The notes beneath the pieces were generated by a model, which saw only the letters and a program-made list of their open reading frames with translations, was not told the DNA's origin and did not search any database. This document shows positions 10,649-24,800 of a stretch of 64,000 nt of DNA, piece by piece (position 1 is the first letter of the stretch; each line of letters starts with the position of its first letter). The translations under genes and the position numbers were made by a program. This stretch comes from Oikopleura dioica (Eukaryota; Animalia; Chordata), in assembly GCA_907165135.1 (NCBI GenBank), contig OU015568.1, positions 16,565,208 to 16,629,207 of the forward strand. The letters run 5' to 3'.

Positions 10649-13600
10649 TTAATACACTACGTACTCCACTACTTCGTACTGAATCGTGCCTTCAGGAATT
10701 GTCATCGGAGGAGGAGTTTTCTTCGATGTAGGTGGAGTGAAAGTAATTGAATAAGCTTGCGGAAGAAGATACCATTTTTCTTTAGCCATTTTGAAATGTT
10801 CGTTCACCAAGGTTAGAAACTCGTTGTTGTCTCCATAATAAACATGGTCGTTGTAACAGTTGTAACAATCTTCCATCATTTCGTAGGAAGCATAGTATTC
10901 TCGGGAAAGAGGAACTCGGATTTGAGTGCCAGAATGGTCGATGAGGGTGTTTTGGAGAATGAAGTCGGAGTTTTCGATTCGGTCAAGTATCATTTGATGG
11001 AAAATCATGGTTCCGTCGGGATTCTGATAGGCCCCGGTGACGGTTAATGGACGAGAGAAGGCGTATTTAGGATGCAGGAAAGCTAGAATATTCTTAATTT
11101 TTAATGATTTCTACAAAAACCTTGTTCATAATTGAATTCTGCTTCTTTCGAGTGGTACATGTCTTTTGGTCGCATAATGGCCCATCCACTTTCATTCAAA
11201 TAAGTTTTGAATTTCATTCTTTTGAGAAGCAATTCAACTTCATTTTCTTGAAATTTCTGTTCCTCCCTTTTCGGATTGAGGTTGAAGCCAGCCAAACTGC
11301 GCGGATAAATTATCATTGTCAGTTGAGTGAAAATTGTTTCAACATCAATATTTTCGTTCAAGTCATGTTTGAGTGCCCATCTCAAAAGAATAGAAACCGA
11401 AATGGGAACACAAAGATTGCTTTCTTTTTGGTTCAAAACATTCTTTGTTAGATTGCTGAAGTCAGAATTGACCTGTCTCGTCAGTTTGTGCTTGAGATTG
11501 GCCATTGCCGATGACTTCGTCAAATTTGGATCGTCCAGGCAAAAATCAGAAGACGCGTTTTTCAGAGAAATGATTTTGGATACTTTTTCTATTCGTAAAG
11601 AGTCTAGGGTCTCGTTTGAGAGCCACTCTGCATCGCAAGTCTAAGAAAAATCATCGATAATGATAGAAGAGGTCTTTTTTATCTGAACTCAAGAACTAAC
11701 CTTTAGCTCCTTTTCAATTGCTTTTCTCTCGACTTCTCCGATCGGGTTGAACAAAAGACTCCATGCTGTTTTCCAATCGCAGAAAAGCAAAACATATAGG
11801 GAAGATTCGTCTCCTCCATCTTTTTCGCAAAGGTGCCTGCTTCTCGAAAAAGCAGCAGAACCAGCATCTTGGAACAAGAAAATGATAATCAGGTCAGTTC
11901 AACTGAATACTCACATAAATTGAATGACATTCTATATTTGCTCCCTCTCCTTACGTAACCCATCTGTCGATAGCTCTTCCGTCCAGTGTCTTCGTCAATA
12001 TTTCCGAAATCGATCCACTTGGCTTCACTATTCTTCAACAGAATGTTTTCAGGCTTCTTGTCGTGATGATGAATCCCAATCTTTATGAAATAATAGTATC
12101 CCTTACTAACACCCAGTGCGATTTTCTTTCTTTCTTCCAAGCTTAATTCATTTGTCTTCAGTTTGCTCCTCAAATCCGAGTCGCACTTTTCCATTATCGT
12201 GATCCAACCTAGGCAGTCTTCGTTTCCCTCATCATTGCTCGAAAAGATCTCGATGTTGGCAAAGTTTTTGATTATGTTGGAATGAAGCGGTATAACAGGA
12301 TCCTCATCCTTCTCCTTGTTTTGAGCAATTTCGAAGTCTATAAGCTCTCGATTTGTGTAAAAGATGCAAGTTTACCTTCCGAAAGATGAATAACAAACTT
12401 AAATTCTTCATCCTTCGTAAACAGCGCCGAGTCAAAAGCCTGAACCCGAACCGCAACTTCCGATTCTCCGAAATTTTCTTCCACCACAATCGCCTCTCCT
12501 CCCACTGAAATCACTTTATGTTGAAAAGTTTTGTCGAAGGTCCATCTTCCAGTTTCTTCTTTTAATTCAGACCGGTCAATGGTTTTTCCTTTCAGATCAG
12601 GATTTTTGTCGAGAATCGTCCTTTGAAGTGAAGTGATCGCCCACTCTTCTGTTCTGAAAGAACCTCTCGTCGAGACTCTTCCTTTTTCATCTTGAAAGAT
12701 CACCTCGATCCACTGACCACAGCCATCATCTTTAAACTCGCTTCTTTCAACGGACAAGATCAACCTATCCAAATCATCTCTGCTCGTCGTCCGCTTCAAT
12801 TTCTTTTTAAACTCTTCCAGCCATTCCTCAACGGCTTCTCGCGTCAACTCTTTTGGATGCGTCGAAACTTTTATATTCGGACTTTTTGGCGGCAATGGAG
12901 GAGTCACAGGACGGGTCTTCTCCAAAACGAGTGGAGTTAAAGTTATCGAATAAGCTTTCGGTAGAAGATACCATCTTTCTGTTTCCATATTGAACTGCTC
13001 GTTCACCAAAGCTATCAACTCTTCGTTGTCTCCGTAATGGACAAAATCGTTGTTACTCTTAAAGCAATCCTTCATCATTTCTTCGGGAGCGTAGAATTCT
13101 CGAGAAGTAGGAATTCTGATTTCACAAGCAGAATTGTCGTTGAGAGTGTTTTGGAGAACGAACTCGGAGTTTTCGATTCGGTCCAGCACCATTTGGTGGA
13201 AAATGATTTCGCCGTTGGGATTTAGGTAGGCAACGGTGACGGTTAAAGGACGGGAGAAGGTAAAGTTTTGATGAAGGAGAACTTAATGATTTTATAGTCG
13301 AATTTATTAAACTGAAAAAAAACCTTGTTCGAAATCAAAAGTCCCCGCTAAAAAGCCACTTCTTAAAATTTCCCATCCACTATTATTATTCAAATATGTT
13401 TTATACTTCAATCTTCTTAGAAGCACTTCAATTTCGGTTTCTTGACATTCTTGTTGCCCTTTCTTCGGATTGAGATTGAAGCCAGCAAAACTTCGCGGAC
13501 AAACCACCATTGTTAGATGTGCAAAGATTTTTTCGAGAGTGAACCAGTCTCTCATTTTCCAATTTTTTGGTTTCAAGTCATTTTCGATCCCCCATTTCAA

Positions 13601-15108
13601 AAGAACCGAAACTGAAATGGGGATACAAAGATTGCTTTCTTTTTCGTTTGAAACATTCTTCGTCATACTTTCGAAATTGATCTGGTTTTTCATTTTTTGC
13701 TTGAAATCGGCGATTGCACAAGACTTCGTCAAATTACGATCGTCCAGGCAAAAATCAGAAGCAGCGTTTTTCAGAGAAATGATTTTTGACAAGTTTCGGA
13801 TTTCTTCCGCTGAAGGAGAGTAGATTGATCCCCAATCATCTCTGTCTGAAAGCCAGACAGCATTGAAAGTCTGAAGAGTTACTTTATCGCGAATCCAAAA
13901 TTAAGATCAGACCTTCAGTTCCTCTTTGATCATTTTTTTCTCTTCTTCTTTGATAGGTTTGAACAAAAGACTCCAGGCTGTCTTCCAATCGCAAAGAATA
14001 AAAATGTGAAGAGCTGATACTTCTCTTCCCACCATCGAACAAACCTGCGTGCTATCCGAGAATGCAGCAGATCCAGCATCTACGAAAAAAAGAAGAATAT
14101 AAAATGAAAGGTGGTTATTTCAAAATAAATTCAATTCATAACTTACATAAAAACGAATTGCCTTTGTATCTGCTTCCTCTTCTCGCGTAGCCCATCTCGC
14201 TGTAGCTTTCTCGCGAACTTTCTTCTTGGATAATTCCAAAATCGATCCATTTTGCTTCCCCATTCTTCAGAAGAATATTCTCCGGCTTCTTGTCGTGATG
14301 CCGTATTCCAATGTTTCCCAAATAGTCGCATCCTTCTTTTACTCCAATTGCGATCTCCTTCCTTTCTTCCAAATGAACATCATCTTTTTGTAGTCTGCTT
14401 CGTAGATCAGAGTCGCATCTTTCCATAATTGTGATCCAACCAATGCAGTCCTCTTTCTTTGTATCAACTGTTGAGAAGATCTCGATGTTGGCAAAGTTTT
14501 TGATTACGTTTGGATGAAAAGGAATGACATTTTCATGATCTTCTCTCATGCCAATAGCCACGTCATAATCTTTAATAAAAAATAAAACGAGTTTTTAAAA
14601 CAATCAAGTTACCTTCCGAAAGATGAATCTCAAACACAAACTCTTCATTCTCCTCCACAAACAGCGCCGAATCAAAAGCCTGAACCCTAACCGCAACTTC
14701 CAATTCTCCAAATTTTTCCTCAAAAACAATTGCTTCTCCTCCAGAAGAAATCTTATTTTGGCGAAGAACATCATCGAGAATCCATTCTCCGGTTTCTTCT
14801 TTTAATTCAGCTCGCGAAATTACTAGTTTTTTCGCCTCTTGATTAATTTTCTCAAGGATCGACCTTTGAAATGAAGTTATCTTCCATTCCGGTCCCCAAG
14901 AGCCATAAACTGTCCCGTTTCCGTTTTCAAAAGTAGCCTCTTCCCATCCAGCACCATGATCTTGGTGAAAGTCGATTCTCTCCACCGACAAAATCAATCT
15001 GTCCAAATAATCTCTGCTCGTCGTCCTTTTTAATTTCTTTTTGAACTTTTCTAGCCATTTCTCAACAGCTTCTCTAGTCAGCTCTTTTGGATGCGTCGAA
15101 ATTTTCAT
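10649..15108 (-). CDS. Tandem double [atypical protein kinase + papain-like cysteine peptidase domain] protein, multi-exon, roughly 1300+ aa
   Basis: Each half has GGEAIV, EVAVR, HHDKKPENILL and WIDFG, then N(Q/E)KESNLC and FHQM..LQNT. ORF 12338..13192 runs uninterrupted from the end of half 1 into the start of half 2. Short GT-AG introns, e.g. 14612-14570. Confidence 0.8.
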
Positions 15109-15390
15109 TGCAGAAATCAATTATTGAAAATTTGCTGCTTCGAAAATTCAAAAAAACATTCCCGTTATCCAGTCGATGATTGCGCAAAACACACAGAATT
15201 GAATTTTTCTGTTTGTTTTCTGAGGGCATCAGGCTAATCGTTATGATTTTCAACAAACGATCTTTTTTCTGGACAATCTACTGGAAAACAATAAACACAA
15301 AAAATTCTTGCCCTCACCTGAGAAATCTAATTGTTTTTAAATTTTTCAAATATAATTTGAAATTTTGCTTGAGCTCGAATTGCTGGCCGC

Positions 15391-15542
15391 CAGGGTGGCG
15401 GGCGCCCAGGTTCACGATCGGTTGGTTCACAATTTTGTGAACCTGGTTCTAAATTTCTGGAGCGCATACAGACCCCTGATTTCATACTTTTAAAAATTTT
15501 GTGAACCGGGTTCACAATTGTGAACCTGGGCGCCCTACAACC
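15391..15542. mobile_element. Degenerate hAT-like MITE
   Basis: Starts CAGGGTGGCGGGCGCCCAGGTTCAC and ends GTGAACCTGGGCGCCC(tacaacc). GGCCGCC flanks both sides. Internal GTTCAC/GTGAAC palindromes. Confidence 0.6.
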
Positions 15543-15820
15543 GGCCGCCAAGAGTAGCTTGAAAATAACCTTTTGGATCCCCCGGTCAAAACTGTCAGTC
15601 TGTCAGGGAAAGCTCCCACGGCGTTCAAGAGTTCATCCTCTCGTCTCGCTTTTCTCAAAGTTTATCTCACCAAAAGTTTTTTCCTCAAAAATACTTCAAA
15701 ATGACGATCCAGAGTCACGAAGATGCGAATTTTCGCGAGAAAAATCAACCCAAAATCAAGGAAATTTAGCAAAATAGAAATCAAAATTAACGAGAAAGGA
15801 AATGCTGATTTCTATAAAAG

Positions 15821-18800
15821 TGTCTTGATTGCCAGTGTATTGGAATTCTGAAAACCGTGGGCGAAGAAGTTTTCCTCTTTCCCGAAGAAGTTCTTGCTTC
15901 GCGAAACATTCACGCGCAAAAGCAAGATCTAAATTCGAAAAAATACAAAAAAGCTTATCGAAAAACGTTTGAGCTTTCTTCCCATGGATTTTCGACATTG
16001 CCCCACAGAGGAAATTATCTCTTTTTTGGAAGCATTTTTTGGATAACCATCATGCTTGTTGGTAGGTCACAATTTTTTGACTGAAAAGTCGAGTTTGTCT
16101 TTTAGCGAATTTTTATTCTTTGGAAAGATCGCGAGCAGTGACAACCTTTTTGACGTCAATTTGCCACCGCGGCTACAAAAAATGCGTGCAAACTGAGAGC
16201 ATGGACTTCTGTGGTCATTTGATGAAGCAATGCCACAAAACGAAAACGTTCATTCAACCGATGCGTGCTTCCAAAATCCAGCAGCGCGAAAACATCGTCG
16301 AGAAATTTAATGAAGAGGAGAATCAAGTCAATCTGCGCAGATGTGAGAAGAAGAAATTTTACGATGCGAAAGTCTGCCGCCATTTCTGCTCAAATACGCT
16401 CGTGCTGAAATCAACGAAGAAGAAGGCTATCTCTCCGTGCGAATCGATTTGCTACGAGCTAACACGATCCTTTGATTCTGCGGGCGAAGTTTGCCCCTTT
16501 GAAAAGTACTGCGAAAGTGGCTGCCCTTGTCCTCATTATCAGTGCGAAAAATTGAATGGCGATCAGAAATTTATTCCCGTTTTTGACTTGGAAAAGAGTG
16601 GTAAGATACTATTTAAAAAATCGCCTTTCTTTGATATTCAGCAGCTGAGAAGAGCTTTGAAAATCAATCACTTTCATTTTTCAATTTTGAAAGCAATTTG
16701 GCGGAAGAAGTTTCTACCGCGAGCGGGGAATTCCTTGCTCACAATGAAATTTTTCATAAAAATTGCCAAATTGGCAATTTTGCCCTTTAGTATAGGTAGG
16801 GCCCAGCCGCAAAAAATGGCCAACTCGAAATCGCTGTTTTTTCAAAATCTGTCAAGATAGGATGATAGAGCAGCTCAAGCTGAACAACTTTCATATTGAA
16901 GACTTTTGAAAAACCTTTGTTGTGTGACCGGAAATGACCTGCAAAAGTCCGAAAATCGCACCAAAATCGGTTTTTGGCCTGCGCAAGGTGTGCGCATCGG
17001 AAAAGTGTCTATTTTTTCTTCTTATTGAAAAGCTCAGGCTCTGAGCTATCTGTAGGGACCAAAAAAGTGGTCTTGGTACCCATTTTTTATGAGTAAAGAC
17101 TGCCGGAATATACCGGAAACCAGCGAAAAATGGCAAAAATGCCGGAAATTAAGGATAGGCTTCTAACTACTACATCTTTTTCGTCCTCGACGTTTAAAAA
17201 CACTTAAGGTCAACTTCGGCCACTTAGTGCCGGAGGACCTCCCGGAGGACCCTCTGCTGGAAGACAAGCTGCTGGAAGACCAGTATTTAAAAATAAAGAC
17301 ACAAACAAAATATAAAGGCTGGATTGGCTGGTTATTGCCGTATTCGGCCACTTGATGCCGGAGGACCTCCTGGAGGACCCTTCAGCTGGAAAACAAGGTA
17401 CTGGAAGACCAGTATTTAAGAAGAAAGATATAAATAAAATATAAAGCCTGGATTGCCTCGTTATTGCCGTTATCGGCCACTTGATGCCGGAGGACCTCCC
17501 GGAGGACCCTCTGCTGGAAGACAAGCTGATGGAAGACCAAAATAAAAGAAAATAAATAAAAGCCTTGTCTGGGCACAAATTGCCACATTTGGCCAAACTC
17601 GATCACTTAAGAGACATCTCGAAAGACCTTAAACAAAAAGACATACTGCTGGAAGACTAATTGGAAAAAATAAGTTGCTTTTCTTGTAACACGTCTGTTT
17701 ATTAAATTTGTCAAGAAAGAAGAGGCCCGTTAATTCTTTTCAATCAGAACCAGGGCGAAGCCGACTCGGAGGAGGCCACGCCCGCTTATTCTTTTCAATC
17801 AGAGTCAGGGCGAAGCCGACCCGAAGGGGAGGCCACGCCCGGTTATTCTTTTCAATCAGAGTCAGGGCGAAGCCGACCCGAAGGGGAGGCCACGCCCGTT
17901 TATTCTTTTCAATCAGAACCAGGGCAAAGCCGACCCGAAGGGGAGGCAACGCCCGTTTATTCTTTTCAATCAGAACCAGGGCAAAGCCGACCCGAAGGGG
18001 AGGCCACGCCCGTTTATTCTTTTCAATCAGAACCAGGGCGAAGCCGACCCGAAGGGGAGGCAACGCCCGTTTATTCTTTTCAATCAGAGTCAGGGCGAAG
18101 CCGACCCGAAGGGGAGGCCACGCCCGTTTATTCTTTTCAATCAGAACCAGGGCAAAGCCGACCCGAAGGGGAGGCCACGCCCGTTTATTCTTTTCAATCA
18201 GAACCAGGGCAAAGCCGACCCGAAGGGGAGGCAACGCCCGTTTATTCTTTTCAATCAGAGTCAGGGCGAAGCCGACCCGAAGGGGAGGCCACGCCCGTTT
18301 ATTCTTTTCAATCAGAACCAGGGCGAAGCCGACCCGAAGGGGAGGCCACGCCCGTTTATTCTTTTCAATCAGAACCAGGGCGAAGCCGACCCGAAGGGGA
18401 GGCCACGCCCGTTTATTCTTTTCAATCAGAACCAGGGCGAAGCCGACCCGAAGGGGAGGCCACGCCAGTTTATTCTTTTCAATCAGAACCAGGGCAAAGC
18501 CGACCCGAAGGGGAGGCAACGCCCGTTTATTCTTTCAATCAGAGTCAGGGCGAAGCCGACCCGAAGGAGGCCACGCCCGTTTATTCTTTCAATCAGAACC
18601 AGGGCGAAGCCGACCCGAAGGAGGCCACGCCCGTTTATTCTTTCAATCAGAACCAGGGCGAAGCCGACCCGAAGAGGAGGCAACGCCCGTTTATTCTTTT
18701 CAATCAGAACCAGGGCAAAGCCGACCCGAAGGGGAGGCCACGCCCGTTTATTCTTTCAATCAGAGTCAGGGCGAAGCCGACCCGAAGGGAGGCCACGCCC

Positions 18801-21800
18801 GTTTATTCTTTCAATCAGAACCAGGGCGAAGCCGACCCGAAGGGAGGCCACGCCCGCTTATTCTTTTCAATCAGAAACAGGGCGAAGCCGACCCGGAGGG
18901 GAGGCAACGCCCGTTTATTCTCACCAATCAGAAACAGGGCGAAGCCGACCCGGAGGGGAGGCAACGCCCGTTTATTCTCACCAATCAGAAACAGGGCGAA
19001 GCCGACCCGAAGGGGAGGCCACGCCTGTTAACACTTTCCAATCAGAGTCAGGGCACAGCCGACCGCGATGGATAATCTGGAACCCGACAGGGGGTGATTT
19101 TTTTTGTTGGAAGCAAAATTGACGCGAGAGACAAAAATAAAAAAAAACGCCTGGTTTAAGACGCTTCCATGAAATATGGCTGTCCCAGACCGAGCATTTC
19201 ATCTGTACATGATCCTGAGTATTTCGAGTTTTTCCGAACCTATCAGTCTCACGAATCATCCGGGAGGCTTTTCACAGATTCAAAATTCGAAATTCCCAAA
19301 AGATCGGAATTCAACGATAAGAAGCGAACAAGTCAAGGCCTATTAAATCCTTTCGGCCTGTCTCTGATTGAAAAGAATAAGCAAGCGTAGCCTCGACTTC
19401 TTTTCGGCTTCGCCCTGACTCTGATTGAAAAGAATAAACGGGCGTTGCCTCCCCTTCGGGTCGGCTTCGTCCTGTTTCTGATAAAAAAGAACAAACGGGC
19501 GTCGCCTCCCCTTCGGGTCGGCTTCGCCCTGACTCTGATTGAAAAGAATAAACGGGCGTTGCCACCCCTTCGGGTCGGCTTCGCCCTGACTCTGATTGAA
19601 AAGAATAAACGGGCGTGGCCTCCCTTCGGGTCCGCTTCGCCCTGAGTCTGTTTGAAAAGAATAAACGGGCGTTGCCTCCTTCGGGTCGGCTTCGCCCTGA
19701 CTCTGATTGAAAGAACAAACGGGCGTGGCCTCCCTTCGGGTCCGCTTCGCCCTGACTCTGATTGAAAGAATAAGCGGGCGTGGCCTCCTCCGGGTCGGCT
19801 TCGCCCTGACTCTGATTGAAAAGAATAAACGGGCGTTGCCTCCCCTTCGAGTCGGCTTCGCCCTGGTTCTGATTGAAAAGAATAAATGGGCGTGGCCTCC
19901 CCTTCGGGTCGGCTTAGCCCTGACTTTGATTGAAAAGAATAAACGGGCGTGGCCTCCCCTTCGGGTCCGCTTCGCCCTGTCTCTGATTGAAAAGAATAAA
20001 CGGGCGTTGCCTCCCCTTCGAGTCGGCTTCGCCCTGGTTCTGATTGAAAAGAATAAATTGGCGTGGCCTCCCCTTCGGGTCGGCTTCGCCCTGACTTTGA
20101 TTGAAAAGAATAAACGGGCGTTGCCTCCTCTTCGGGTCGGCTTCGCCCTGGTTCTGATTGAAAAGAATAAACGGGCGTGGCCTCCCCTTCGGGTCGGCTT
20201 CGCCCTGACTCTGATTGAAAAGAATAAACGGGCGTTGCCTCCTCTTCGGGTCGGCTTCGCCCTGGTTCTGATTGAAAAGAATAAACGGGCGTGGCCTCCC
20301 TTCGGGTCGGCTTCGCCCTGGTTCTGATTGAAAAGAATAAGCGGGCGTGGCCTCCCCTTCGGGTCGGCTTCGCCCTGACTCTGATTGAAAAGAATAAACG
20401 GGCGTTGCCTCTCCTTCGGGTCGGCTTCGCCCTGACTCTGATTGAAAAGAATAAACGGGCGTTGCCTCTCCTTCGGGTCGGCTTCGCCTTGGTTCTGATT
20501 GAAAAGAATAAGCGGGCGTGGCCTCCCCTTCGGGTCGGCTTCGCCCTGACTCTGATTGAAAAGAATAAGCGGGCGTGGCCTCCCCTTCGGGTCGGCTTCG
20601 CCCTGACTCTGATTGAAAAGAATAAACGGGCGTTGCCTCTCCTTCGGGTCGGCTTCGCCCTGGTTCTGATTGAAAAGAATAAGCGGGCGTGGCCTCCCCT
20701 TCGGGTCGGCTTCGCCCTGACTCTGATTAAAAAGAATAAACGGGCGTGGCCTCCCCTTCGGGTCGGCTTCGCCCTGACTCTGATTGAAAAGAATAAACGG
20801 GCGTGGCCTCCCCTTCGGGTCGGCTTCGCCCTGGTTCTGATTGAAAAGAATAAGCGGGCGTGGCCTCCCCTTCGGGTCGGCTTCGCCCTGACTCTGATTG
20901 AAAAGAATAAGCGGGCGTGGCCTCCCCTTCGGGTCGGCTTCGCCCTGACTCTGATTGAAAAGAATAAACGGGCGTTGCCTCCTCTTCGGGTCGGCTTCGC
21001 CCTGGTTCTGATTGAAAAGAATAAACGGGCGTGGCCTCCCCTTCGGGTCGGCTTCGCCCTGGTTCTGATTGAAAAGAATAAGCGGGCGTGGCCTCCCCTT
21101 CGGGTCGGCTTCGCCCTGACTCTGATTGAAAAGAATAAACGGGCGTTGCCTCTCCTTCGGGTCGGCTTCGCCCTGACTCTGATTGAAAAGAATAAACGGG
21201 CGTTGCCTCTCCTTCGGGTCGGCTTCGCCCTGACTCTGATTGAATAGAATAAACGGCCGTTGCCTCTCCTTTGTGTCGGCTTCGCCCTGACTCTGATTGA
21301 AAAGAATAAACGGGCGTGGCCTCCCCTTCGGGTCGGCTTCGCCCTGGTTCTGATTGAAAAGAATAAACGGGCGTGGCCTCCCCTTCGGGTCGGCTTCGCC
21401 CTGACTCTGATTGAAAAGAATAAGCGGGCGTGGCCTCCCCTCCGAGTCGGCTTCGCCCTGGTTCTGATTGAAAAGAATTAACGGGCCTCTTCTTTCTTGA
21501 CAAATTTAATAAACAGACGTGTTACAAGAAAAGCAACTTATTTTTTCCAATTAGTCTTCCAGCAGTATGTCTTTTTGTTTAAGGTCTTTCGAGATGTCTC
21601 TTAAGTGATCGAGTTTGGCCAAATGTGGCAACTTGTGCCCAGACAAGGCTTTTTATTTATTTTTTTTTATTTTGGTCTTCCATCAGCTTGTCTTCTAGCA
21701 GAGGGTCCTCCGGGAGGTCCTCCGGCATCAAGTGGCCGATAACGGCAATAACGAGGCAATCCAGGCTTTATATTTTATTTATATCTTTCTTCTTAAATAC

Positions 21801-24800
21801 TGGTCTTCCAGTACCTTGTTTTCCAGCTGAAGGGTCCTCCAGGAGGTCCTCCGGCATCAAGTGGCCGAATACGGCAATAACCAGCCAATCCAGCCTTTAT
21901 ATTTTGTTTGTGTCTTTATTTTTAAATACTGGTCTTCCAGCAGCTTGTCTTCCAGCAGAGGGGTCCTCCGGGAGGTCCTCCGGCACTAAGTGGCCGAAGT
22001 TGACCTTAAGTGTTTTTAACGTCGAGGACGAAAAAGATGTAGTAGTTACCATGGAGTTGAGCTCTAAAGGGAGATCGAGAATCTGAGCTACTGAAAAATG
22101 CACTGAGTTTTTCAGTAGCTCATTCTGAGCGCGCCTAATTTTGGGGAGAAGCCGCGCAAACCATTGTCGGCTCTCTCATTGGCTCGGACTTTCCAGATTC
22201 TGTTCTTCAGAATCTCGAGATTCTTCTAAACAGCCAGGCAAGCGTTCAAGAAGTTTTCTAGACTTCCCCGACACTGATTTGCGCGGGATAGGGGGAAGGG
22301 GGCCAAGAGCTTTCTCCCCAAAGAGTTAAACTTCATGGTAGAAGCCTATCCTTAATTTCCGGCATTTTTGCCATTTTTCGCTGGTTTCCGGTACTTTCCG
22401 GCAGTCTTTACTCATAAAAAATGGGTACCAAGACCACTTTTTTTTGGTCCCTACAGATAGCTCAGAGCCTGAGCTTTTCAATAAGAAGAAAAAAATAGAC
22501 ACTTTTCCGATGCGCACACCTTGCGCAGGCCAAAAAAACGATTTTGGTGCGATTTTCGGACTTTTGCAGGTCATTTCCGGTCACACAACAAAGGTTTTTC
22601 AAAAAGTCTTCAATATGAAAGTTGTTCAGCTTGAGCTGCTCTATCATCCTATCTTGACAGATTTTGAAAAAAACAGCGATTTCGAGTTGGCCATTTTTTG
22701 CGGCTTGGCCCTAAGTATAGGCTATACTAAAGGCTATACTGTATAGCTTTTTCATCAGTTTTATGAAAATAACAAAGCCGATTGGTGCAACTTTTCTCAA
22801 TGGTCAACACTTTCTCGTTGATTTCGAAGGAAACTTGAAAATATTAAGCGAAGATGGGATGTCGGCGAAATTTGTTGTCAATCGAGACTTTTCAAGGTAA
22901 ACAGTTTAAACAGTCAGTTAAACGTTACAGTCAGAGTAATGTTTTTTTGTAGCACTGGCAATTTCATGTTTCACTTTGGATCATCTATCGGCACTCACGA
23001 AATCGAGATTCGAGACAAATACGACGCAAAAATGTCCTTTCCCGTCGTCGTCATCTGGAACCGGTCAAATTTGTTCAATTTATGACTCGTTAATTTGATC
23101 TAAATCTCTAAAAAAGCACAAAATATTGACCGCCGAAAGCTCTCCCGAAAGAAGAAAGGACAAGTGTTTCTACTACGCGCCGGACTACAATTTGAATAGA
23201 TTCGAAGCAGCCCAGGGTTTGAGCAATAAACCGCTAAAATCTTCATTCGATTTTAAGGGTACATCGCCAGTAATCACTTCAACGCAAAAACATCGTCAAT
23301 CAGCTTCGGCGGAACATTCTATCTGATGAGCATGAGACTGGGCGATGGATGGATACAAATTTCAAAAACTGTCGCTCTCCACAAAATAAGGAAGAGTGAA
23401 GAGCTCGAAAAAGGCTGGCGGAAGGATGAAATCGCGATTCCGGCCGAGTTTAGAGATTTTGACCCAGTGCATGTTGTACCTCTGGGACGGGTTTCAAATA
23501 ATTGATTAATGAATTATTTGGAATAAATCATTCCTGAAAATTTAAAAATCCAGGGTAGATCGACCTTGGACGACTTTTGATCGTTTTAGTCACCCGAAGC
23601 ATCGTCCTTTCCAACATGCAATATTCCTTGCTGCTCGAAAAAGAAGGCAAGTTCCTCACCTTCGGCAGCGACTGGATCGGCTCGCTCGTCCAGTACAATC
23701 AAGAAGCACGATGCTACTCGGCAATGTTTGCTCCTGACGACCTCGCGTATTCGAATCCATATGGGACCAACAACGACGAGTGCGAATATTTCATCAATGC
23801 GTTTTCAAGCAACGATCAACTTTACCTTCAAAGTCTTGTTTTTGACGCAGCTTTCGAGATTCACTTCGATTTCGAGCGAATAGATCTCGACTTTCGGCAA
23901 CAGGAAGCGGCGAATAAAATGCACGTCACAAGCAACCCATATTTCACCTTTCACGAAGACATTTTCCCGCAGTTTTCGAAAAACGCGGTTCCTCAATTTG
24001 ATAATTTTCCTCCCTCAGTCATGGCTCAGATTCAATCTTAAGCTAGAATTCCACTCTATCAAATCTTGAGCCGACCATGAAGCAAGTAGCTTATCTCCAC
24101 CGTATCCGCTCGCTATTCTTCCCAACGCTGGTTTTCGTTCCTTCAATGAGTTTGACCACATTTCTTCGTTTCAAATGGATTTCAATGAGACACGAAAACT
24201 CAGTCTTGATATAAAGGTGCTGTTCGAAATCACATAAAATTTTGAAATGCGAACTATTTTTCTAACAAGCAAGATAATCAAAAACGCGACAACTCCGGCG
24301 ACTGTTCTACAACTTCAATCTTATGAAGATAACTCAATTATATTTGAATTCAAACTGCTGCAAAGTGGCTTCCTCGCTTGCCAATCTGACTTTTTCAGTG
24401 GTGGAATAGTGCTGGATCTTCCCGACTTGAAGTGGTCATCAGTTGAGATCGTCTTCCATGTTGAAGATGAGTCGTCTCATATCTTCGAAATGAAAACGAA
24501 CGGAACGCCGATCGGGTCAAAAAGAATAAAAAATCTGCAATCATTTACAGACAAGAGAATACGATTATTCAAGTTTGACGAGAAAACAGAAGTCAAAAAT
24601 TTCTTCTTCTTTGAAAACCGGCCGAGTCAACTCGTGGTCGTCTTGCCAGAGCAGTATGAGATTTCGATGCCATACGCTCTTTTCGGAGACGGTTCAAGAG
24701 ATGAAAATATCAATATTTTGTCTCCTGTGGATTTCGAGGGTTCTACCGCTCAATTTTCTTATTCGTCGATTTATGCTCTCGTCAAGGAAGAACTCTTTCT

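Follow-up and report, generated by a model that had tools for sequence, protein, structure and literature searches.

Within the 64-kb window analysed here (64,000 nucleotides of contig OU015568.1 of the tunicate Oikopleura dioica), the minus strand between positions 15108 and 10649 is predicted to encode two in-frame copies of a lineage-specific module, each of which joins a kinase fold to a papain fold. This combination is an undescribed, lineage-restricted architecture. The whole is best explained by a module with an active peptidase and a kinase-like regulator, a reading to which we assign a probability of roughly 0.55. The architecture and the folds themselves are highly probable, the assignment of the C-terminal domain as an active cysteine peptidase or isopeptidase is fairly probable, and a regulatory or defence role is a doubtful suggestion. 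The original prediction for this locus had described a single kinase-like domain fused to a papain-like cysteine peptidase; both domains are present, but the span holds two complete units in frame. Further features not covered by that prediction are an arginine at the beta3 position of the kinase-like domain, the two-unit fusion, and the presence of more than 100 paralogues in the tunicate genome.

The predicted gene model is a single open, GT-AG-spliced frame of nine exons (4083 nt, 1360 codons), starting with an ATG at 15108-15106 and ending with a TAA at 10651-10649. Exons 1 to 5 (15108-14613, 14569-14147, 14079-13913, 13870-13324, and 13281-12376) and exons 6 to 9 (12337-11915, 11867-11701, 11640-11121, and 11082-10649) are open frames. 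All eight introns follow the GT...AG rule, measure 38-67 nt, and have consistent phases when the frames are read against the DNA. Direct-repeat analysis resolves the span into two tandem units about 2.2 kb apart, with 70-86% nucleotide identity and a single reading frame. Each unit comprises four parts: an N-terminal region, hydrophilic and about 105 residues long, then a kinase-like domain, a linker, and a C-terminal domain with a Gln/Cys...His/Asn pattern. In unit 1, the N-terminal region (about 104 residues from the ATG at 15108-15106) occupies positions 14797-15108, and the kinase-like domain, delimited by the Pfam PF00069 match and its motifs, occupies 13913-14796 (the end of exon 1 with exons 2 and 3). 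The linker and papain-fold domain follow at 12932-13870 (exon 4 with the beginning of exon 5), as defined by residues and conservation, and this domain ends with ...WYLLPKAYSITLTP. A proline-rich junction in open frame, LVLEKTRPVTPPLPPKSPN (12875-12931), contains no stop codon and leads into unit 2. By the same kinds of evidence, unit 2 consists of an N-terminal region (12560-12874), a kinase-like domain (11701-12559), and a linker with papain-fold domain (exons 8 and 9, 10652-11640), after which the stop codon is reached. The window was analysed exon by exon, and the structure predictions were made on database homologues.

The residues expected of a cysteine peptidase are found in canonical form in unit 2, where Gln (11430-11428), Cys (11412-11410), His (10999-10997), and Asn (10951-10949) occur in the order known from clan CA. 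Both peptides on which the original prediction was built, VLNQKESNLCVPIS and IFHQMILDRIENSDFILQNT, as well as the Cys codon at 11412-11410, are reproduced exactly in the minus-strand frames, and both peptides lie in this downstream unit. The papain spacings claimed for them are also present, with six residues from Gln to Cys and 16 residues from His to Asn. In the frames of unit 1, Cys (13627-13625), His (13198-13196), and Asn (13150-13148) are found, and the oxyanion-Gln position is taken by Glu (13645-13643), which stands six residues ahead of the Cys in the motif NEKESNLC. The units share the motif N[Q/E]KESNLC[IV]PIS and, past one intron of 38-45 nt, the motif FHQM[IV]LDRIENS[ED]F[IV]LQNT.

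Conservation was assessed on 51 further paralogous loci of the same assembly, which were aligned exon by exon using tblastn, yielding 49-52 sequences per position. The papain-like assignment depended on the conservation of Cys, His, and Asn across the family, and each of them is kept in 48-49 of the 49-52 paralogues. Specifically, Cys is retained in 49/52 (three have Ser), His in 48/49 (one Asp), and Asn in 48/49 (one Thr). The oxyanion Gln is kept in 51/52, with the Glu of window unit 1 being the sole exception. As Gln, Cys, His, and Asn are kept in 48-51 of 49-52 paralogues, the pattern is not a product of chance. Asp+5 and Gln+15 nearby are also nearly invariant. At a conservation threshold of at least 90%, the Cys exon contains 30 conserved columns and the His exon 25. 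Unit 1 deviates in five of the 30 Cys-exon columns, including the oxyanion Gln, and in one of the 25 His-exon columns, and unit 2 in none and two, respectively. The median paralogue has one deviating column per exon, a value against which the Cys exon of unit 1 stands out, exceeding 46/48 paralogues. Judged from the residues, the peptidase domain of unit 2 looks canonical, and that of unit 1 looks more derived, with the change of Gln to Glu and four other changes in conserved columns.

The fold of the C-terminal domain was predicted on the homologue P0084 (297 residues, essentially the C-terminal domain alone) with a 53-sequence alignment. The resulting model has a mean predicted local distance difference test score (pLDDT) of 75 and a predicted template modelling score (pTM) of 0.70. 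It is composed of two lobes: one is helical, with the Cys opening its central helix, and the other is a beta-sheet lobe that carries the His. Helix 77-93 begins with Cys77, His207 is located in strand 204-215, and Asn223 closes the next hairpin strand. In this predicted structure, the placement of Cys, His, and Asn matches the arrangement of papain, as judged by secondary structure. In an exhaustive structure search with VIA-align over 48,161 chains, the model was matched, among others, to cathepsin B (9.0), the peptidase domain of PCAT1 (8.7), ATG4A (8.5), staphopain C (8.4), and UfSP (7.7), with C1 and C39 peptidases as the best structural matches. Nearly all of the 50 listed rows are papain-fold enzymes; the kind of match is clear, and its strength is moderate. 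Several of the alignments have the conserved Gln (model residue 71) as their first position, where it faces residue 23 of cathepsin B and residue 29 of Der f 1. These are the oxyanion-hole Gln positions of the two enzymes. Foldseek yielded nothing at E ≤0.001 for this model against the PDB; its best weak rows above that value include PCAT1 and ComA (C39), AvrPphB (C58), and staphopain (C47). Of the structure-library searches with this model, the one by VIA-align alone was informative. A feature search in the ESM Atlas leans towards Peptidase_C1/C39_2 clusters (0.90-0.92) and serves as a lead only. The model thus agrees with the clan CA fold that had been proposed for this region, with all three residues on the canonical secondary-structure elements.

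The kinase-like domain is very divergent and is recognised by sequence as well as by structure, in line with the initial description. Both units match PF00069 (Pkinase) above the gathering cut-off of 31.7 bits, with 42.6 bits for unit 1 and 34.5 bits for unit 2, and the match is confined to profile positions of about 74-156, the catalytic-loop region. When the kinase region was searched against PDB sequences, TTK and CDK9 alone reached an E value of about 1e-3. A model of the full-length homologue P0064 (pLDDT 77.8, pTM 0.78) shows a bilobal kinase fold in its kinase part, for which Foldseek found ERK2, JNK, IRAK4, and TTK at E values of about 1e-6 and a probability of 1.00. The motifs SxGGEA, VAVR, HHDKKPEN, and DFG are common to both units. 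In unit 1, as read from the DNA, they comprise the G-loop SSGGEA, the beta3 motif VAVR with its Arg at 14688-14686, HHDKKPEN at 14300-14277, and DFG at 14243-14235. Residue counts were made on family proteins of the Norwegian strain of O. dioica, with 25-31 proteins per position. The catalytic loop HxDxKxxN is invariant, with H, D, K, and N each present in 31/31 proteins, and DFG is found in 30/30. Just one of 31 proteins has the HRD arginine; this is accordingly a non-RD kinase. At the position of the beta3 lysine, all 25 proteins counted have Arg, and both window units read VAVR. The beta3 lysine (VAIK) anchors ATP, and its replacement by Arg is the standard kinase-dead substitution. The domain is therefore described as an atypical kinase or pseudokinase.

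The N-terminus of the protein, MKISTHPKELTREAVEKW..., is hydrophilic and has no signal peptide, as stated in the original prediction, and the protein is for this reason inferred to be cytosolic. No Pfam match was obtained for the N-terminal region on the window exons searched. In the P0064 homologue, residues 1-120 are modelled with a pLDDT of 83-94 as a small alpha/beta domain. Three full-length proteins of the Norwegian strain (P0066, P0070, and P0079) have a hydrophobic start, MLEFSILAILATCIAGM..., which was not seen in the window copy or in the other assembly copies inspected. It could be a membrane anchor or a signal in one subfamily.

In the proposed mechanism, the nucleophile acting on an amide bond would be the Cys that starts the helix, with His serving as the base, Asn orienting the His, and Gln forming the oxyanion hole. 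The kinase-like part of the chain is probably a pseudokinase or an atypical nucleotide binder. It would bind a nucleotide or a partner and thereby may regulate or target the peptidase in the same chain. Candidate substrates would be general protein, a ubiquitin-like (UBL) conjugate, or the protein itself. Several observations weigh against this proposal. The C-terminal domain has no Pfam match on any window exon or on the homologues P0084, P0006, P0037, and P0064, and no PDB sequence was matched by phmmer with a single sequence or by a 19-sequence profile. Furthermore, the P0084 model is moderately confident near Gln71-Cys77, with a pLDDT of 67 for this block and values below 50 for residues 59-73. 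Paralogues with Ser in place of Cys (3/52) or Asp in place of His (one) may be non-catalytic, going by these substitutions, and the beta3 Arg may mean that the kinase domain phosphorylates nothing.

The joining of the two units is directly visible in exon 5 (13281-12376), which connects the His/Asn region of unit 1, the proline-rich stretch, and the N-terminus of unit 2 without a stop codon. A single open frame of 314 codons (13282-12341) spans the junction. In unit 2, an ATA (12874-12872) replaces the ATG position of unit 1, and the first exon part of this unit contains no Met, so that unit 2 depends on the start codon of unit 1. Two more in-frame two-unit loci, L053 (C5:15522800-15529800) and L054 (C4:5410300-5417000), were revealed when the junction peptide was used as a query. 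The downstream units of both have Ser for the catalytic Cys, and that of L054 also has Thr for Asn. In a third pair, L055/L020 (C1:5890300-5896500), a single TGA parts a family copy from the junction-like sequence of its upstream neighbour; the copy at this pair carries Asp in place of the catalytic His (IFDQMVLDRLENS). Given the in-frame junctions at other loci, adjacent units appear to have become fused repeatedly, with the intervening stop and start codons lost. The two-unit chain in the window most likely arose in this way from two neighbouring paralogues. In a tree built from 54 Cys-exon peptides, neither the independence of the three fusions nor a sister relationship of the two window units was resolved. 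Specific to the window locus is the combination, read from its residues, of a canonical downstream unit with an upstream peptidase domain that has Glu for Gln at the oxyanion position.

The in-frame union could also be an evolutionary by-product, in which neighbours merged and one or neither unit still matters while the other decays. This is a real possibility, although an unlikely one. It would account for the missing start codon of unit 2, for the lack of a shared motif among the linkers of the three fused loci (window, L053, and L054), for the Ser in place of Cys in the second units of L053 and L054, and for the altered oxyanion position and the many deviating Cys-exon columns of unit 1. 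However, every exon is open and every splice site is intact in both units. The ratio of non-synonymous to synonymous substitution rates (dN/dS) between the units is 0.30 at a dS of 0.81 (exon-wise Nei-Gojobori), and thus both units were constrained during most of their divergence. The better conserved of the two is unit 2, which has no start codon of its own; it has therefore seemingly been kept, which implies its translation within the fusion.

A second alternative concerns the chemistry of the papain-fold domain, which might perform acyl or acetyl transfer, transglutamination, deamidation, or a lyase reaction, or might act as a non-catalytic binding module, instead of being a peptidase. The papain fold is known to host these other Cys-His chemistries (PMC10318531). 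Among the lower VIA-align rows are a pseudomurein endoisopeptidase, a phytochelatin-synthase-like protein, contact-dependent inhibition (CDI) toxins, and a 'CD lyase', and by sequence the domain matches no peptidase family. The best structural matches, however, are the C1 and C39 peptidases. In the transferase/transglutaminase cluster, the oxyanion-hole element is mostly missing (PMC10318531), whereas the Gln-6-Cys and His-16-Asn spacings correspond to the canonical pattern of the peptidase cluster. The near-invariance of all four residues also speaks against a mere scaffold. A non-peptidase function is accordingly unlikely, and a cysteine peptidase or isopeptidase is the favoured assignment.

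Comparison with known clan CA families places this putative peptidase outside each of them. MEROPS family C1 (papain, cathepsin B, and Der p 1) shows no detectable sequence similarity to the O. dioica domain; only one of 19 members of the family to which this domain belongs matches Peptidase_C1_2 (PF03051) at an E value of 0.071, and the PF00112 (Peptidase C1) and PF03412 (C39) profiles gave no match on the sequences searched. C1 enzymes are secretory zymogens with a signal peptide and an I29-type inhibitory propeptide, whereas the O. dioica protein is without both and has a kinase-like domain upstream. Additionally, C1 enzymes have a Trp after the Asn (NSW), where the O. dioica domain reads QNT. 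In C39 peptidases, the third catalytic residue is Asp, and the peptidase forms the N-terminal domain of bacterial ATP-binding cassette (ABC) exporters. The C39 members PCAT1 and ComA have no sequence match to the O. dioica domain, which has Asn as the third residue, a kinase-like partner, and about 80 extra C-terminal residues. The UBL-specific clan CA peptidases (ATG4, UfSP1/2, and ZUFSP) score below C1 and are not similar in sequence to the O. dioica domain, in which no UBL-binding element was recognised. The domain is closest structurally to C1 and C39, yet it lacks the features by which membership in either family is defined.

No characterised protein with this architecture was found, in agreement with the earlier remark that it is unfamiliar from characterised animal proteins. 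A papain-fold domain and a kinase are paired in one chain in plant EDR1/CTR1-type kinases (PF14381 with PK_Tyr_Ser-Thr) (PMC10318531). The EDR1 domain is N-terminal to the Raf-like kinase and falls in the transglutaminase/acetyltransferase-like cluster (PMC10318531). In contrast, the O. dioica order is kinase followed by papain fold, with a canonical oxyanion Gln. The PF14381 profile gave no match on the window exons or the family members searched, and the literature search returned no other described pairing of these folds beyond plant EDR1, which regulates disease resistance. Tandem duplication of a unit within one chain is also known from other kinase-fold proteins. In proteins of the MLKL and WTK/Rpg1 types, a domain of kinase fold whose ATP site is degraded is combined with an effector or with another kinase unit. 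MLKL and the plant tandem kinase proteins may serve as analogues in this respect; there is no homology beyond the kinase fold, and the putative O. dioica effector has a peptidase fold.

The third alternative is that the chain is a self-processing polyprotein, in which each peptidase cuts at or near its own C-terminus and frees two units, similar to viral papain-like leader proteases. The original prediction had mentioned an autoproteolytic function, and at three loci the in-frame junction lies directly past the papain-fold domain. The three junctions share no conserved motif, however, and most members of the family consist of one unit, with the C-terminus about 10 residues past the last strand, which makes self-processing very improbable.

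The family is large and appears narrowly distributed. A phmmer search with the unit 1 Cys exon against 1.84 billion representative proteins gave 54 matches, of which the named ones are an O. dioica 'unnamed protein product' in each case (CBY13560.1/E4XV29, CBY31701.1, and CBY31442.1), and the rest are short metagenome fragments from ENA/JGI. These matches speak for O. dioica as the source and against a nematode, which the tiny introns might suggest; nor is the contig human. A word-indexed search with the C-terminal domain of P0004 retrieved 51 proteins, each of them either from O. dioica or an unnamed fragment from a metagenome, and the precomputed Pfam domains on these 51 proteins belong to two kinase families alone. 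Full-length single-unit members have 690-720 residues. A search of the 64.3-Mb assembly to which the window belongs gave at least 129 matches to the Cys exon. Clusters on contigs C1, C2, C4, and C5 account for many of these, and the paralogous copies have 31-67% amino acid identity. No paper on this family was found in a full-text literature search.

An explanation of the family as cargo carried by a transposon or an endogenous virus, instead of genes of the host, is most improbable: at least 129 clustered matches in a 64-Mb genome, nearby hAT and miniature inverted-repeat transposable element (MITE) sequences, and mostly viral nearest ESM Atlas clusters would fit this idea, but no inverted repeats flank the gene, the copies are old and diverged with common intron positions and a dN/dS of 0.30, and a viral structure library gave no match to the P0084 model at E ≤0.001.

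For the host module with peptidase and kinase-like regulator, a biological role can be proposed tentatively. The original prediction had suggested a signalling or defence effector, for example DUB-like or autoproteolytic, and these functions would be candidates. To our knowledge, O. dioica lacks much of the classical immune toolkit. The size, clustering, divergence, and narrow taxonomic range of the family would fit a fast-evolving defence or conflict role, which is a guess. A more specific and improbable proposal is an appendicularian-specific intracellular surveillance system, in which the degenerate non-RD kinase domain would sense factors of pathogens or selfish elements, or serve as a decoy for them, and would switch on the peptidase as executioner. 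As part of this proposal, and equally speculative, the two-unit chains might be sensor/helper pairs by analogy with plant tandem-kinase immune proteins.

The family of more than 100 genes couples a kinase fold to an apparently intact papain-fold peptidase domain, whose peptidase side is invisible to domain databases. The family is a candidate lineage-specific system of regulation or defence. It adds a sequence-orphan branch to clan CA and represents a second, independent case of kinase/papain-fold coupling after plant EDR1. Furthermore, the in-frame two-unit loci show how multi-module proteins emerge from tandem arrays.

Some minor observations relate to the family and its surroundings. In the metagenome homologues P0006 and P0089, a conserved insert of about 40 residues, rich in Ser and Arg, separates the helical lobe of the papain-fold domain from its beta lobe. 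The O. dioica copies lack this insert, which suggests a second source species. Family copies gather towards one contig end, at 14.5-16.6 of 17.09 Mb on C1 and at 11.6-12.7 of 12.96 Mb on C2, and about 15 matches run within the 450 kb upstream of the window. The window as a whole has a guanine-cytosine (GC) content of about 40% and very short introns, and it includes a GC-rich block (53-54%) at positions 18001-22000. A small GC-rich inverted repeat with 36-nt arms, 78% complementary and 98 nt apart, is located at 15383-15552, about 270 bp upstream of the ATG, and may be a MITE.

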